DNA from: Lepidodermella squamata
Taxonomy: Eukaryota > Animalia > Gastrotricha
Direction of reading: 5' to 3'
Assembly: GCA_047495785.1 (NCBI GenBank)
Contig: JBLDXI010000009.1
Location: 1,302,001 to 1,366,000, forward strand
Length of the DNA: 64,000 nucleotides
Numbering within the stretch: position 1 is the first letter of the stretch; every line of letters starts with the position of its first letter. Made by a program: the position numbers and the translations under genes. The notes below the pieces were generated by a model, which was given only the letters and a program-made list of their open reading frames with translations, searched no databases and was not told the origin of the DNA. This document shows, piece by piece, positions 34,106-43,252 of this stretch.

Positions 34106-35511
34106 ATGGCAGCGTTTTTGTGTTATGCTATCCTATTAATAGCCCACTTCGGCTCAATTTCAGCTAATGGTAACTTGAATGAGAAAATAATTGAATTTAA
34201 CGTAACGACTTGAAATAAATTTAAGGCGGCTTTTTGGCATATCTACGCCAAGCCCAGACCAGCTCTGGAACCCATCTGCCAGCTGGTTCCTACTACGGCC
34301 AACCTCAGTACCAACCTCAAAATGAACACGCAGAGCCTGCTCATCGCCCGGCTGTTCCGCAGCACCCAGTCACCCCGCACTACAACCAGGAGTACTACGA
34401 TTTCCAATATTCCCAACAGCAAGCCTGGACCAACAGCAACTACCGTCCAGTTATCATCCCGATCAGGCCGGTCCCTCCGCCACCGCGGCCGCACGAGTAC
34501 TACCCGATCCCCCCGATTGATGTCCCAGCCGAAGAAGTGGAGCCACCGAAGAAGAACTCGACCCGTCGCGTCACCACAGTTTCGCCTACAACTGTAAATC
34601 GCCACCAATCGAGCAACGTAACTGAGCATCAAACTACAACTCCGGCGGTTTTGACCACGAACTGGCAATGGAGTGAGAAAAACGAGACGATTCACGAAAA
34701 TAACGCGACCATCATCGACGAGCCTGTTATCCAGTTCGAAAATACTACAGTTGCCATTGAGGTTGAAAATCAAAATTCAACCCAGCTTAACGTCACGGAG
34801 CATTCGGAGGTTGACAGCCATAACTCCACCCAAGCAGCTAATTCAACGGTTACTATTTCGGCTTCAAACAGCACGGAATCTAATAACCAAACTATTTTCC
34901 GAGTCAGGCGAAGCAAAGATCCTCTCGAGGAACTGGGCGCTGCTTTCCATGCCTTGAACAACCTGAGCAATGGCAGCCTTGAACGTGTCGTTAACAAGTT
35001 CTTCGACATGGCTTCTAACCTATCCGACGCTATTGAGAATGCGACAACCGTTTTCAACATGACCCTCCACGACTGGGATGTATCGAATAATGAAACAAAG
35101 TCAACCAACCTAACAAGCCATGGCCATAAGTCGAAGCTCCTTTCCCACGGTATGGACCGCATCGGAATGGGGTCTATTATGGTGAATGAAGCTTCAAACG
35201 GCTCACTAGCTCAAAATATTTCGCTTTTCGTAAATAACGCCACGGTTCGAAATGAGACGATTGATAATCTGAATTCGACCGTGCAAAACGCGACTAGTAA
35301 CGGCCACCTTGCTAAATTATTCGCCAAGCATCACATTGAGGGTGACGCTTTCGCTCAGCATAACATGACCAACACCACTTCCTGGCCACCGAAAATCAAC
35401 TCAAGCAATTTTACTACTGCTTTGCCTGATATTAAGAATTTAAATTTGACAACCATCGTCTTTCCAACTACGACCCAAAAGGCGAAAGTGACGACTAAGC
35501 AGGACCATTGA
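34106..35511 (+). CDS. Secreted P/Y/Q-rich, Asn/Thr-rich glycoprotein of unknown family; 2 exons
   Basis: Signal peptide MAAFLCYAILLIAHFGSISA, one phase-1 intron, long ORF with about 29 NxS/T sequons (hand count) and an RVRR site. Confidence 0.8.
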
Positions 35512-35940: not shown

Positions 35941-37725
35941 ATGAGAGAACAATTAATTTGCCGATTAATTCCAAGTGTCATCACGGTATTAACTGCGACT
36001 ATCGGGATGAAAGGTTAGTGTCAAAAATCACTTGAAGCTCTTAGAAATTTTTATTATTTTTCAGCTATTCCAATGATCCGTGCTCAAAGTAGGAATAATG
36101 CCAATTTCATATATTGTAATTTTTGGGCTTATTTCCAAGGTCTTCCTCGCCAACAGCTCCTTCCCCTGCCCAGCAGCATGGCTCAAGCAAAATTCGTTGA
36201 CTCGCTATCATTCGGACCCGAGAGTTTAGCCGATATCACCAACGACTGGCGAACTAGCTGCTACGCCACTTTGAATCGAACAACTAATAGCGCCCAACTG
36301 AGCCGTCCAGATGGCAGATATGTCGTAGGATCCATCTGGAGCAAAGAGGTATCACCTCTAAAAATACCAAGTCCGGAGATGATTGAGTATTTTTTATAGG
36401 CGATTCCACGAAATTATTCGCATTGGCGATTGGAGATGAGATTTCGGCATCAAGACGCGCCACCTAAGGACATAGCTTTTTATTTAATCGCCCTCCCCAA
36501 CGGAACAACACCTGAAAGTAACATTTCCCCCATTTCTTTGCAAAAAAACATTCCAATTCCGCACAGATTGCATTGACGATGGTCTATATGCGATGCCTCC
36601 GGGTAGAACGGGTCTGGGAATTCGGTATTTCGCGAGAACTGGCGTTGTCTACGGCATATTCACTAATTTAGAGGCTCAAATAACGGGGGGCTTGTCGCTG
36701 AATTGGAACAACATTGCACAACAAGGCTCGGCGGCCGATCGAATGACCTTCGATAAATGCTTCATTGGCAGCCCGGACGAAATGACACGTTATGGCCGCG
36801 AATTCATCGCCATTATACAATATTTTAACGAAAGAATATCTGTAAAAAATTTCCCTTGCATTTCGCTGCCACTAAAAGTTGTTTTCTAGCTCACCATTGT
36901 TCCAACTATGGCAAAAGACGTGGCATTGGACTGCTTTGAGCAAGTCAGAGTTGATTTCGATAGTTTGCTAGCTATCAATCCGTGGCCTGTTTACATCGGC
37001 GTCGCGGGTGGATTAGATAACGATCTGTTGGCAATTTCCGAGCTCAGCTTTTTCAATCTTGTTGAACGAGAGTCTCAAACTACGAAAGACGCATTAGCAA
37101 CTTCTAAAACAACTACTCCTACAATAGATACAACAGGATCAACAGCAACGTCAAGCTCGACTACTTCGACAACTGAAGGCATGCCGACTACAACCTTTGA
37201 AGAGTCGACCACAGAAACAACTGAAATCCATAGTTCGAGTACGACTGAAGCCGTTACCAATGGCTATTACAATAGCACTACAGCCTTGATAACTTCAGGT
37301 AATTTCTCCACCTCTACCCTGCCATTGAGCAATACTACAACAATGACGACGACCAATCGAGTTGGGTCAAGCACTACAATACCTCCATTGTCTACGATAT
37401 CCCCATTTTGCACAAATTCGTTTGGTGACCAGTGTGGGGGTGCGATGTTTCGGGGCCAAACATGTTGTACGCCCGGGCTGGTTTGCTCACCAGTAGTCGG
37501 AGGTTCTTCGAAGTGCGTTTTGCCAACGATTTCAGTGACTGCCACTCCGCCTAGGATTACGAGAGTGTCGACGCCGAAAGTGACGCTCTCAACTGCCCCA
37601 GAGAAAATCACCCCTCAAAGTACACCTGTGGCGATAGCTCCAGCTAGTAAGTTTCACTTTCCGATTTTTTCAATAATTTTAATAATTTCCAATAAAATTA
37701 ATTATACACTTTTTTGCCAGATTAG
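35941..37725 (+). CDS. Putatively secreted L-type (ERGIC-53/VIP36-like) lectin domain + Ser/Thr mucin stalk + CBM1-like module
   Basis: Spliced: SLSFGP...W...VGSIWSKE|AIP..HWRLEMRF...TGLGIRYF...C...IIQY...C...YIGVAG...ISELSFF; Thr-rich run; CTNSFGDQCGGAMFRGQTCCTPGLVCSPVVGGSSKC at 37409-37516; start codon and last exon uncertain. Confidence 0.72.
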
Positions 37726-38000
37726 ATGGGTTCTGAAATAAGAATAACCCAAATTGTCCTCTGAAGTACTCATATGTATAAGGCTCGACATAATTCAGGA
37801 GTAACTTCGCTTTTTTAGTCATTTGAGAATATGGATGTCGGGGTTTTGAAGCCCGCATCAGCAGGATGCTTTTCGAACCGGATATTATTCATATTTCTCT
37901 CTATAATTGAACCGCACGGGCTAGTCGCGTTATTTTTCATTTAAATTAGCCAACCGCGCTGTAATTTGCGATTTAGCTATGTGTCTGTGACTTTTTGAGT

Positions 38001-40341
38001 ATGTGGACGTTCCTGATTTTGACATATTTTCTCTCACCTAATATCTGTGGCGCAAACTTGGCTCAGAACAAAACAACACGTCTCCGTGTTTTGTTTCTCT
38101 CCCCTATTGCCTTCATCGACCCTCGCCAGGTACTGGCAGGCACAGTCGCGATGGGTTATGTCGCCGATAAGGTCAACTAGACCCGACATTCTTCGCGATT
38201 ATTTCGTCGAGTTCGTGCCTGTTGATGAGTACCTCGGTATACGGGCAACTACGAGCCTAATTTCATTCCGGCGAGATCTGTCAGCCCTTCAATCGCCTAT
38301 AATAGCAGGCCCGGCTATCACAAACGGCTGCAAGGCTATTGGCCCGGTTTTGAAGTACATTCAAACAATTTCGCTTTCAACTTTCTGCAGCGCGCCGTTT
38401 TTATCCGATCCTACTTTGTACCCGAATTTGTTCCTATCACAATCTACCGCAACTAGCACCGCCCTATCTATGGTAGCTTTTATCAAAAATATCGGATCTT
38501 GGAGTCGAGTAGCTTTATTTGCGACGACTTCGAATATTAAAGACTTCTCAACCGCACTACTCCTTAATGATCAACTGATTTCAAACCGTGTAGAGGTCCC
38601 TCTTTTCGATATTATCAATGACGTAACCCCAGAGATAATCAATGGTCTGAAACTGTCTGGAATCAGAATAATTATCATTTCCAACGGAAATTCTGTTCTT
38701 GTCCCCCAGTTCCTATGTGAGGCGTTCAAAGCAGGAATTTCGGGTCCCCGTTATGTTTTCCTTTCTTTCGCAAATGGATTTTCCCTTGCACCTCGGCCCG
38801 GCTGTACTGTCGCCATGCTTCATGAACAGGCAAAACAAATGTTTTACTTTGGAAATGCAGCTAAACCTAGTAGTTACGATCGAATCAGTGATTTAGGTGA
38901 TACTGCTGGGGATTTTGAACAATTCATGGGCCGAGCTACAAATTTAACAATCGATGCTTATTTGACTGCATTCCAGCTGCGGGACACTCTAGTAAACGTC
39001 TTGATTGCTCTGAATGAGACTGATAGGCGACTGAAATCTGAGTTCAATCTCTCCTTGCATGATTACCACTCTAAGCCTGATTTTGTCGCTGAAATCGCTC
39101 GGGAAGTTATCCTGGCTAGTGAACCCATTGGGCTAAGAGTTGGACGAACTTCGTACAGCAAAAATGGCCTGCTTCTAGGCGATATTCAAGTCGTCACACA
39201 ATGGGATCCTTTCGCAGGCATGCGAACCCTCTATTCTGTCCATCAAAGTTTAAACAAGTCTTTTAGCGATGTTGATCTGCAAGGATTTTCGCTGGAAAAA
39301 GTAGCTGAAATTATCTGGCAACCACCTTTAGATCGGCCTCGTGTCAAACGTCTGGCGTTGTCAATCCCACGGGCTATTTTCGTCGTTGAGTGGATTCTAA
39401 TCGCGGTTGGAAGTGCTATAATTATCATAGGTCTAGGACTTATTTTAAGGAACAAGCCTGCTTCCTGGAACTATCGATTTTCAAAGTCGTACTCACTACT
39501 CGGTTGCTTGTGCTTAAATGCTTCCTCCGCTCTGTTCGCCGTTGATCGCTCGACAGGAAGCTCAGGAATAGTCATGGCCGCCTACTTCCTTCTCGGAGTT
39601 GGGATATCAGCAGTTTGCGGACAAATCGCTAGCCGTCTTTATGCGATCAATTCTCACGTGAAGAAGAGCATTAAAAATAGCCACAGAAAATCGCGCAATA
39701 CGGTGAGTCCGACTTCTAACAAAATCAGACCGAAAGCCGTTGTCATATTTCGACACAATTCAGCCGAAATCATGGACGTCCAAAGTCTGAAAATAGGTTT
39801 TGTCATAACTCTACCTAGTTTAGCTGTTTTAATCGGATGGGTGGCCAGTCACAAATTTGTTTGTCTCGAAAAATCTGATGAAATGCCGATTTACAACGAG
39901 TTGTCTGATACTGTTCAAGAAACGTGGTTTGTCAGTTGTTTGATGGCTCCTAATTCCTTGACAGGCTGGTCCCTTCTAAGTTCAGTAGGTGTTGCTCAGT
40001 TCTTGCTGCTATTGTTTTCATTGATGATTGCATTCCACCTTAAACAAGTCAAAGGAGTCGCTGCGAATTGCCCGGAATTTTACGCAATTGCTATCTCAGC
40101 TATAGCAAGCGCCACTCTTTTACCTGCTGGTCTCTTGATAGCTCTGATTCTTGATGAGACTAATCGTCAAGCGGCCATAAGTCTAGCTCTGATCATTTGG
40201 TCTCTCTTTGAATCGTTCACGTTACTTTATCATGGTATTAACAAGAAGAAAGTGATGGCCTATGTGAAATCTCACCATCGCGTGAATAACGGTGAAAGTT
40301 TTGTAGAAGGGTCAACCACAGTTGGACATTTTGATCACTAA
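38001..40341 (+). pseudogene. Intronless GABA-B-like class C GPCR with a frameshift near 38178 (pseudogene or assembly error)
   Basis: Signal peptide and first flytrap strand in one frame end at VADKVN* (38180); RPDILRDY, YPNLF, WSRVA, IRIII, GISGPRYVF and 7TM continue in another frame. Confidence 0.75.
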
Positions 40342-40402
40342 ATTCAGTAGATTTATCAAATAAATTCAGCAAATTTTTAATGATTATTTTGCCTCATTTT
40401 AG

Positions 40403-40960
40403 GAGTCATAACCCTGATGCAGGTGAAGACAATAAAAATGGAAGGTGTGGATGTGGATCTAAATGGTTTGAAGGACGTTAACAGCGGCACTTATCGAGCA
40501 ATTCGCATGGTTCTATCGGATCAAATGCGAAGAATTTACGACAAAGCAGGCCTAACTGTACTCTTCATCAACGTTACAAGCATCAGTTTCATGTAAAACA
40601 GCTTCCTTAATACAGCAGATCGATCAATTTCTTTTTATCAGGTCTCCGTCAGGTGAATTTCTAGCTCTAATAGACGCCACAATCGACTGTGGCCTTTCAA
40701 TCAAGGACAAAGACGGCTTGAATTCTAGTTTGGCCAGCGCAGTCGCTTCATTGATGGCTGATGGCGCTTTTGATAACAGTTTTGGCCGGCAGTCGCCTGT
40801 TACGCTGGAAATTGTTCACTTCGAATTGGAGTATGCGAGACAGCCTGAGGAAACGGCTGTTTCAAGTGCCTTTGCTCTGTTATCGGGTGACGAAAGACAA
40901 CGCGTCTTGTTCAAAATTATATTTCTGTATCATTCCAGTAATTACCTGTTCAAACATTAA
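40403..40960 (+). CDS. Two orphan exons encoding a SEA-like domain; possible 3' end of the lectin-CBM1 gene
   Basis: Acceptor ttttag at 40402, 49-nt GT-AG intron 40593-40641; joined reading LKDVNSGTYRAIRMVLSDQMRRIY...VLFINVTSISFM|SPSGEFLALIDATID...LASAVASLMADGAF resembles the SEA pattern by eye. Confidence 0.45.
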
Positions 40961-41114
40961 GCTTTTGCAAAATAAAGACAAAATGAAAAAACTTCTGATC
41001 ATAAGTATTTGTAGGAGAGCTAAAACAGCAGGTCAAATCTAGTTTCTAAATGGCATCAAAGCTTATCCCACCTTAAACAATTATAAAACTGAATTTAAAT
41101 TATGTCAAAAGTAT

Positions 41115-41187
41115 CGAGGCTGCCAGGAGTCGAACCTGGAATCTTCTGATCCGTAGTCAGACGCGTTGTCCATTGCGCCACAACCCC
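41115..41187 (-). tRNA. tRNA-Arg-ACG: tRNA-Arg, anticodon ACG
   Basis: GGGGTTGTGGCGCAATGGACAACGCGTCTGACTACGGATCAGAAGATTCCAGGTTCGACTCCTGGCAGCCTCG: 73 nt, stems pair, A and B boxes present, TTTT terminator a few nt downstream. Confidence 0.97.
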
Positions 41188-41538
41188 GCTCTACGTATCA
41201 TGCAATAAAACCGGCTCATACTGACCAGGCCGGCCCACTCAACGTCGGTAGCCATTCATAATAATAATGATGGGCCATGTGCGTAATGAAAAAAAACGGA
41301 ACAGCAGCAGCTGTCTACGCTCACAACGTGCTTACATTCATTCGCTTAGCACGAGGCAGCTCTCATTATTATCATCGACGTACACAGCTGCTGAAGTTAT
41401 CACGAGCATTGATAACCTTCCGGTGACCTCCCCCACACCGGTTTTTGCACTACTGGTGCATTCAGCTGTTGGCATGCATATTTACCGTTAAATCGGCTGC
41501 ACATTTTCCTGATATTTTTAGGTTTACTTTTGAGGAAA

Positions 41539-43252
41539 ATGCAGTGGTGGGACTTTTTTCTTTACGGATATGCGTGGCTTTTGTTTTCTTTCATATTTTA
41601 CGGAGCTCATCGATTCATTTTCGATCGATTTTTGTACCGATTACCGCGCGGACCAACGCCATTACCATTTATCGGTTTGATAAATTATGCTTTATTTATG
41701 AATAAAATCCAAAATTTAAATTTATACCTAGGTAATGCGTATTTGATGGGATCAGATCCGAAAAGAAAGCCGTGGCATGTTTTCAGGAAATTATCTGAAA
41801 AATACGGCCCATTATTCACGTTCTACTTCGGCCAAATTCGTGTTATTGTTCTTATGGATGCCAAAGTCATTCGCCAGGCCCTCGTTACCCTGCAGAAGCA
41901 TTTCAGCAGCCGAGCGGACAATTTCTTTCCAGGCTACGAAATCCTCGCCCAAAGCGGCGTGGTATCATCAGATGGCGATGTTTGGGCGAAAAATCGCCGA
42001 TTTTGCGCCAAAGGCCTTCGCGATTTCGGCCTTGGAACCAACTCGATGGCCAGTCGAATTCAAGACGAAGCCGCCGTTGTTCTACAACAATTCGAACAGC
42101 AAGCGGACGGCGTTAACATTCACTCAGGGAAAACTGTAAACAAAATCCTTAACAACGGGCTGTCAAACATCATTTACGGCCTGATTTTCGGTCAACGTCT
42201 AGCTTACGATGACCCTAAATTTGTTGAATTAATTCACCAAACCGAGCAATTTTTCGAACGGCCATTTAAAGACAACGCGATTTATTTCGCATTACCTATC
42301 GCTGCCAAGTTCGATTTACCGCCCCAGGTCGAGGACATTCAAGGCATTGGGAATTTGATTGAGAAGCAACTCCTAACAGCGATCGAAGAACGAAAATCCA
42401 ATTTTTCGTCGGATAATATTCGCGATTTTATCGACGTTTACCTAAGCGCGGAAAATGAGCCAGTTTCATCTGAAAATCAATTAAACTTCCATCACTTCGC
42501 CGCCAGTATGCGAGATTTAATGATTGCTGGATTTGAAACAACGACAGCAACGCTTTTGTGGACTATTTTGTACTTCTGCAAATTGCCAGAGCAACAATTG
42601 AAGTGTCAGGCGGCGGTCGATAAGGTGATAGGAACTGATCGCTTGCCGAACCTAGCCGATCGCGCTGATTTGGTGTATTTGGAAGCAGTTTTGAATGAAA
42701 TTCTACGATATGTTACCATTGTACCCTGCCCTGTCTTTCACGCTGTCAAGGACGTAGGTGTCGAACTTGAAGGTAATATAATTTTCTGAATTTTCACATT
42801 TTAAAAATGTTCAAATTAAAAAATTTTAACAATTAAAATTTAAAATTTAAAATTTTTTTTTTTATGAATTGTGAGCCATTAATTTTAATTTTTTTACAGA
42901 TTTTAATATTCCGCCTGAATCAGCTATAAGCTACAATATTTGGAATGTTCATCACGACGTTGAATATTGGAAAGACCCAGAAGAATTCCGGCCCGATCGC
43001 TGGATTGACCCAGATAGCGGCGCGCTCTTGACCCACTCGACGCACTTTTTCCCATTCGGCCTTGGTCCTCGAGTTTGTCTCGGCGAACAACTGGCGCGTC
43101 TCGAGTACATCATCTTCCTAGCCGCCATCATTCAGCGCTTCAATTTCGCTTTCCCGCACAGCGACTACGCCGTCGATTACGATGGTGGACGCCATGGGGT
43201 GACTAATGTCCCGCCTGAATTTGAGGTCGTCATCACACGCCGTCCATTCTGA
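41539..43252 (+). CDS. Cytochrome P450, CYP2 clan (CYP-B); at least 3 exons
   Basis: PRGP, WAKNRR, AGFETT, EILR, PDRW, PFGLGPRVCLG; a short upstream exon near 41474 is possible. Confidence 0.94.

Follow-up and report, generated by a model that had tools for sequence, protein, structure and literature searches.

A lectin-fold mucin gene of the gastrotrich Lepidodermella squamata with a predicted splice across an old, frameshifted G-protein-coupled receptor copy

The window analyzed here is a stretch of 64,000 nucleotides (nt) from the gastrotrich Lepidodermella squamata (NCBI GenBank assembly GCA_047495785.1, contig JBLDXI010000009.1, positions 1,302,001 to 1,366,000, or C9:1302001-1366000); the assembly comprises 121.2 Mb in 151 contigs, and genome-wide scans were made in six frames. 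On the forward strand of the window, five exons for a lectin-fold, mucin-type protein and two exons for a SEA-type module lie on either side of a GABA-B-like class C G-protein-coupled receptor (GPCR). The two sets of exons are best read as having descended from a single gene, which probably still operates as one; taken as a whole, this reading stands a little above an even chance. The gene would encode, in order, a signal peptide, one strongly diverged L-type-lectin-fold head, a Ser/Thr-rich stalk (presumably heavily O-glycosylated), a worn CBM1, a Pro/Thr linker and, on the far side of a 2,756-nt intron, a SEA-type module that is non-cleaving and has no membrane anchor. The intronless receptor copy, which is now frameshifted, would have arrived in a normal phase-1 intron before the SEA-type module. 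At full length, the product would be secreted and untethered, and use of a nearer acceptor would give a shorter secreted form that ends just past the linker. Both the present use of the long splice and carbohydrate binding by either module we infer from the sequence. The order lectin, mucin, CBM1 and SEA had been proposed in a sequence-only reading of this stretch and is upheld by homology, with the head and SEA assignments resting on paralogs.

The upstream exons and their first, nearer splice option are laid out as follows (P/T/S-rich, or PTS, denotes a mucin-type stretch rich in Pro, Thr and Ser):

35941..36013, + strand: exon 1, 24 codons and one further base (phase 1), with the ATG and a hydrophobic leader resembling a signal peptide
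36065..36348, + strand: exon 2, N-terminal part of the lectin-fold head, with a GSIWSKE motif at its end
36400..36517, + strand: exon 3, head strands 'W-R-L-E' and 'D-I-A-F-Y'; ends in phase 1
36567..36841, + strand: exon 4, middle of the lectin-fold head; open and in phase
36890..37069, + strand: exon 5, first 60 codons, C-terminal head strands 'Y-I-G-V-A-G-G ... S-F-F-N-L'
37070..37405, + strand: exon 5, PTS (mucin-type) stretch of 112 residues
37406..37522, + strand: exon 5, a single, degenerate CBM1 (Pfam CBM_1), Cys-rich, 39 residues
37523..37646, + strand: exon 5, Pro/Thr-rich linker, 51% Ser+Thr+Pro, ending at a phase-1 donor
37647..37725, + strand: near splice option, a 74-nt intron followed by Asn and a stop

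The upstream gene model is sound. The leader in exon 1 reaches a best 12-residue Kyte-Doolittle mean of 2.03 and is followed by the donor G/GTTAGT at 36014, and the four introns between exons 1 and 5 are 48–51 nt each, with GT..AG ends. The donor at 37647 (GTAAGT) is in phase 1, as had been read from the sequence, with the exon that ends at 37646 contributing one base. If this donor is joined to the near acceptor at 37720 (AG at 37719-20), the codon becomes AAT (Asn) and is followed at once by TAG at 37723-25, as noted in the same reading, which took it for a soluble form. The intron removed in this case (74 nt) exceeds the gene's other short introns (48–51 nt).

Beyond the near stop lie the receptor and the second set of exons:

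37995..40341, + strand: GABA-B-like class C GPCR, intronless and frameshifted, with an ANF_receptor match
40388..40402, + strand: far acceptor, a pyrimidine tract plus TAG, phase 1
40403..40592, + strand: exon for the N-terminal half (N-half) of the SEA-type module; phase 1 in, phase 2 out
40593..40641, + strand: intron within the SEA-type module, 49 nt, phase 2
40642..40960, + strand: last exon, with the C-terminal half (C-half) of the SEA-type module, a tail and TAA
40971..40976, + strand: AATAAA, 11 nt past the stop of the last exon

The far acceptor at 40402 (AG at 40401-02) is also in phase 1, as claimed: it adds two bases, so that the junction codon A+GA reads Arg and the exon continues in an open frame. 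Upstream, the donor at 37647 is its only sensible phase-1 partner and matches it in phase, and 37646 probably still splices to 40403, judging from the sequence. The frameshifted, intronless class C GPCR does sit between the donor at 37647 and the acceptor at 40402, on the same strand. The intron that holds it had been called the last one; it is the second to last, since the further intron at 40593-40641 precedes the last exon at 40642.

The 3' exons keep about 170 codons open, with all family-invariant residues retained and the signals of the internal intron intact, and the ratio of N-half to C-half divergence is comparable to that among the paralogs. They cannot stand alone, because their frame is closed 7 codons 5' of the acceptor and the first ATG falls within the first strand, without a leader. 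Could they belong to some other transcript, with a start site of its own or with a phase-1 donor that happens to lie toward the 3' end of the GPCR? The final 100 nt of the GPCR frame do contain several phase-1 GT dinucleotides, and only 61 nt separate the GPCR stop from the acceptor. However, the GPCR family is intronless, and an extracellular SEA domain could not sensibly follow the cytoplasmic tail of a seven-transmembrane receptor. A start of its own would leave the module with no leader and an incomplete first strand, and the paralogs always put the module behind a PTS stalk. Such a transcript is thus very improbable.

Which kind of module do the 3' exons encode? All searches and alignments of the head and of the SEA-type module were run exon by exon, never on the spliced protein, which lowers the sensitivity for both. 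In this setting, the N-half exon has 37-39% identity with three paralogs on contig C25 (E 1e-6) and keeps the three invariant residues of A2, the alignment of the N-half family. With hhalign, A2 matches ten Pfam-level SEA domains of the genome with 74% probability (P 2.8e-5, columns 16-45), and A3, the alignment of the C-half family, matches the same ten with 91% probability (P 9.5e-7, columns 64-100). The C-half profile, in the round before inclusion, finds the Pfam-level SEA domain of C19 at E 0.00027 and the last exon of the window at E 0.00097. The C25 paralogs themselves match Pfam SEA weakly (E 0.016-0.057, profile positions 18-44), and among solved structures A2 finds two SEA chains of MUC1 as its best matches, though with an E of 0.27, which is not significant. 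A word search of public proteins with the last exon found no relative.

The exon structure points the same way. The 49-nt intron has the same position and phase in the loci L009 and L013 and in three modules of L014, and both the C19 gene and the tandem modules of L014 likewise have a phase-1 acceptor just 5' of the first strand. Together, the profile-profile links and the intron positions and phases in common with the paralogs argue that the downstream exons are a divergent, non-cleaving SEA module. At the cleavage position, this module reads S-G-E-F-L, with Glu replacing the Ser nucleophile, compared to K-G-S-I-I in the canonical SEA set of the genome; no self-cleavage is expected, because G-E stands in place of G-S.

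The weakly hydrophobic tail that had been put forward as a possible anchor does not look like one. The best 19-residue Kyte-Doolittle mean in the last exon is 0.96, and lies outside the tail, compared to 2.7-2.9 in the transmembrane (TM) helices of the paralogs; no TM helix is present. With neither a TM segment nor a convincing glycosylphosphatidylinositol (GPI) signal, an anchored isoform is unlikely, and any full-length product would be secreted, since the tail is not hydrophobic. Past the stop and the AATAAA, at window positions 40985-41042 (+), the second frame has a brief hydrophobic segment and then 'I-C-R-R-A-K'. Together they resemble the 'C-C-R-R' juxtamembrane tail of the C25 genes and may be either a relic of a lost TM segment and tail or a product of chance.

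The paralogs show how the two sets of exons would have fitted together. In C25, one continuous exon encodes a lectin-fold domain, then a PTS stretch, then the module N-half, and the next exon encodes the module C-half, a TM helix and a 'CCRR' tail. The gene L012 on C19 (G000:C19:588000-597999, +) has several lectin-fold domains, PTS and a Pfam-level SEA domain with K-G-S-I-I, and forms a bridge between the TM-type C25 group and the canonical SEA arrays. At L011/L014 (G000:C9:4352000-4365999, +), at least seven tandem two-exon SEA-type modules are found, in one or more genes; a phase-1 intron precedes every one of these modules and a phase-2 intron divides it, and PTS and Cys-rich domains are interspersed in a MUC16-like layout. 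Pfam-SEA matches in the genome number 54. The lectin-head/mucin/SEA genes, with dozens of copies in this genome, are a lineage-specific family; a word search of public proteins with the 329-residue exon of one paralog found no relative. In these paralogs, head, stalk and module belong in one gene, which argues that the two parts at this locus belonged together as well.

The head of the protein is very probably an L-lectin-fold domain of this lineage-specific family that lies outside Pfam L-lectin membership: it is a paralog that was modeled, and the head is linked to it by weak, collinear sequence matches. Exon 2 matches a paralog exon on C25 (L013, 8195-7824(-); phmmer E 0.0067, among 1295 open frames), and iterating the search brings in the equivalents in L010 and L009. 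The intron after the GSIWSKE motif is at a position common to exon 2 and the paralog L009. Exon 3 was compared with two paralog alignments by hhalign, matching A5 (columns 8-38, P 1.8e-4), where it aligns to the start of the paralog exon next after the counterpart of exon 2, and A1 (columns 43-68, P 1.2e-3); with the family hidden Markov model, it is the first non-family match (E 0.079). The first 60 residues of exon 5 align to A1 columns 176-226, the end of the paralog exon (hhalign P 0.0022), and to the same place in A5 (P 0.16). Thus, exons 2, 3 and 5 match the paralog head family in collinear order, and exon 4 is assigned to the head solely because it lies between exons 3 and 5.

Since the comparisons ran exon by exon, the evidence on the fold was taken from a paralogous head domain that is encoded in a single exon. 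An AlphaFold model of this domain, made with a ten-row alignment, has a predicted local distance difference test score (pLDDT) of 71 and a predicted template modeling score (pTM) of 0.75. In a Foldseek search with this model, all rows listed were L-type lectins (best E 5e-7). An independent structure aligner gave Z scores of 16.3 for ERGIC-53, 15.7 for VIP36, 15.2 for an Entamoeba legume-lectin-like domain and 14.9 for Emp47p, with other ConA-like folds at 12.7 or below; the root-mean-square deviation from the L-type lectins is ~2.9 A across ~187 residues. A feature search of the ESM Atlas with the paralog domain returned generic sandwich or CBM clusters alone, and an exon-wise phmmer search of the solved structures with the gene of the window returned nothing. 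The Asp of the 'D-x-A-F' strand is kept in the head, and the Asp/Asn-rich metal loop appears to be replaced by 'Y-F-A-R-T-G', as judged by eye.

The PTS stretch that follows is 58% Ser+Thr+Pro over its 112 residues and holds three N-x-S/T sequons. Behind it, the module scores 21.9 bits with the Pfam CBM1 model (PF00734; cut-off 20.6), covering profile positions 4-23 of 29; in the genome scan, the same module scores 24.4 bits and is the weakest of 30 CBM1 matches at about ten loci. Exon 5 was searched against 1.84 billion representative proteins, and all 19 matches found (best phmmer E 2.7e-11) came via the CBM1, with neither a self match nor a relative of the head. Ten of the 19 were scanned with Pfam, and all ten are CBM1 arrays; the third-best match is a CBM1 protein of Brachionus calyciflorus. 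The four cysteines (QC, CC, VC and KC) align with the CBM1 repeats of P0001, P0003 and P0005, and the QCGG core is kept. On the binding face, the C-terminal W/F-Y pair before the last Cys has become Gly/Ser, and the N-terminal Phe positions remain. By this alignment, the module is a true but worn CBM1; the CBM1 of the sequence-only reading is confirmed above the Pfam cut-off, but it has lost two of its binding-face aromatics. It is not a one-off transfer, because the animal's genome is well supplied with CBM1 modules: a single open frame on C2 (G000:C2:624750-639985) carries an array of as many as nine, and some seven further loci have matches too. Among the places listed, no other CBM1 coincides with a SEA domain.

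How old is the GPCR that now separates the two parts? The receptor matches ANF_receptor at E 1.2e-9, its best solved relative is GABA-B receptor 1 (E 7e-7), and its translation shows seven hydrophobic segments by eye; the Pfam 7tm_3 model did not match it. When the receptor is aligned with three paralogs, its frame is seen to shift by +1/-2 between 'KVN' and 'RPDIL', at ~38179. The site is not a homopolymer, which makes a HiFi error unlikely. A 51-nt intron was considered as a repair of the frame and rejected, as the frame remains wrong. The family is very large: 62 copies were scored out of 1231 first-look candidates, on many contigs (C54, C23, C42, C2 and C10 among them), the GABA-B-like copies scored having open frames of mostly 750-860 codons, and a word search of a public protein collection at E 1e-10 gave no relatives. 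At least 60 intronless paralogs of the receptor are found in the genome, and the best is only 51% identical to the copy in the window, which is thus old. There is no near-identical DNA copy anywhere in the genome, and a recent insertion was rejected for this reason.

The arrangement might also be an artefact, if a chimeric join had placed the GPCR between the exons. The likely source assembly was made from multiple-displacement-amplified DNA, and chimeric reads were screened and removed according to the likely source paper (PMC11660948). However, the assembly was built from HiFi reads of this DNA at ~83x (PMC11660948). The contigs of a 2024 run contain 91% of the window's sampled words, though this run possibly represents the same data, and the flanks are ordinary intergenic and intronic sequence, with no inverted or duplicated junctions. 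An artefact can hardly be credited.

A more serious contender is that the arrival of the GPCR truncated the gene, so that the secreted lectin-mucin-CBM1 protein now ends at the near acceptor and the SEA exons are unexpressed leftovers. This is unlikely, though it is by some distance the most credible of the alternatives, and several of the points that speak for it are among those that weigh against a single, continuous gene. The near acceptor is strong and well formed; only 74 nt away from the donor, and with introns of roughly 50 nt being usual in the genome, it may take most or all of the splicing. The splice from 37646 to 40403 is predicted from the sequence. The only run that is possibly RNA holds 5% of the window's sampled words. 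The TM anchor of the paralogs has no counterpart here, and its loss could be the decay of an unused exon; the out-of-frame 'C-R-R'-type motif at ~40985-41042 is possibly what remains of a cytoplasmic tail. The C25 paralogs have no intron between the PTS stretch and the module, so that the intron in question is not common to the closest relatives.

To these must be added the domain assignments. Pfam SEA (PF01390) has no match at the locus, either exon by exon or in the genome scan. Likewise, the Pfam L-lectin model (Lectin_leg-like, PF03388) did not match any exon at E up to 1, and the six-frame genome scan with this model at E up to 10 did not match the head locus, even as it found canonical ERGIC-53/VIP36-type genes elsewhere (on C21 and C55, E 1e-18 to 1e-29). 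Exon 4 alone gave no significant match, by exon-wise search or hhalign, and no relatives were found outside this genome. The L-lectin head and the SEA-like domain of the earlier reading thus stand by homology, the head through paralogs that resemble ERGIC-53/VIP36 and the two SEA exons through profile-profile links in both halves, in order; as Pfam families, neither is matched.

On the other hand, truncation does not readily account for what is left. The leftovers would have retained about 170 open codons, invariant residues, internal splice signals and phase next to a copy old enough that they should have decayed; intact 3' exons are hard to explain without selection, because the GPCR copy is old. 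Furthermore, no AATAAA or ATTAAA is found within 811 nt past the near stop, though this measure is unreliable here. By the same token, the AATAAA at 40971 is weak evidence for the long form, because the signal is inconsistent in control genes: its spacing varies among them, and several paralogs have none within 300 nt. Descent from one gene, probably still functioning as one, is therefore the reading favored here. In its fullest form, the long splice is real, and a working gene spans the old, broken GPCR and secretes a lectin-fold head, mucin stalk, CBM1 and non-cleaving SEA module as one protein; this is a tentative proposition, for which the chances fall somewhat short of even.

Upstream, a 425-codon open frame at 34234-35511 (+), with many Asn-x-Ser/Thr sequons and a Pro/Gln/Tyr-rich start, stops 430 nt 5' of the ATG of the lectin gene. 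Downstream, a tRNA-Arg with anticodon ACG lies at 41114-41188 (-), ~150 nt 3' of the last SEA exon, and a 419-codon, cytochrome-P450-like open frame (by eye) at 41530-42789 (+) lies 570 nt 3' of the SEA exons.

Gastrotrichs have barely been sampled, and among about 1.8 billion representative proteins none is similar to the head or the SEA-type module. If the favored reading is true, the lectin-head mucin family would gain a member that bears a CBM1 and one that is secreted without an anchor, and a compact genome with introns of roughly 50 nt would be seen to tolerate a 2.7-kb intron carrying another gene. If the long splice is true, it would show a lineage-specific family of surface mucins yielding soluble factors that bind glycans or fibers. 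The significance is modest: the gene is a variant of a family in this genome, both of its binding-type modules look worn at their canonical sites, and the splice is predicted.

How does the gene compare to known systems? The combination was not found in the databases or literature searched, but the claim that it has no described equivalent must be narrowed, as lectin-mucin-SEA genes occur by the dozens within this genome, and the kinds of component (L-lectin fold, mucin stalk, CBM1, SEA and nested gene) are all known. ERGIC-53, VIP36 and Emp46-47p (PF03388), the best structural matches of the paralogous head (Z 15-16), carry similar strand motifs (G-S-x-W, W-x-x-E, D-x-A-F and a Gly-rich last strand). 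In ERGIC-53 and VIP36, the lectin domain is joined by a stalk to a TM helix, behind which comes a short sorting tail in the cytosol, whereas the head here precedes PTS, CBM1 and a SEA-type module, with no TM helix anywhere downstream. The succession of a PTS stalk and a SEA-type module is that of MUC1 and MUC16; unlike these, the gene here has G-E at the cleavage position and no TM or GPI anchor, and it has a lectin-fold head and a CBM1, both absent from MUC1/MUC16-type mucins. The Cys pattern and QCGG core are those of Brachionus calyciflorus and other CBM1 proteins, but only profile positions 4-23 are covered, and the binding face has lost its C-terminal aromatic pair.

As in other nested genes within animal introns, a complete gene unit lies on the same strand between a donor and an acceptor of matching phase. 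Unlike typical cases, the guest is frameshifted, the host genome otherwise has introns of ~50 nt, and the host splice is predicted. There is also a likeness to the lectin-head/mucin/SEA family of the animal's own genome, with which the gene has in common its domain order, the exon structure of the module and the intron phases. It differs from this family in having a single head, an added CBM1, a lost anchor and SEA exons displaced by a 2.7-kb, GPCR-holding intron; the CBM1, the lost anchor and the interposed GPCR are what is particular to this locus.

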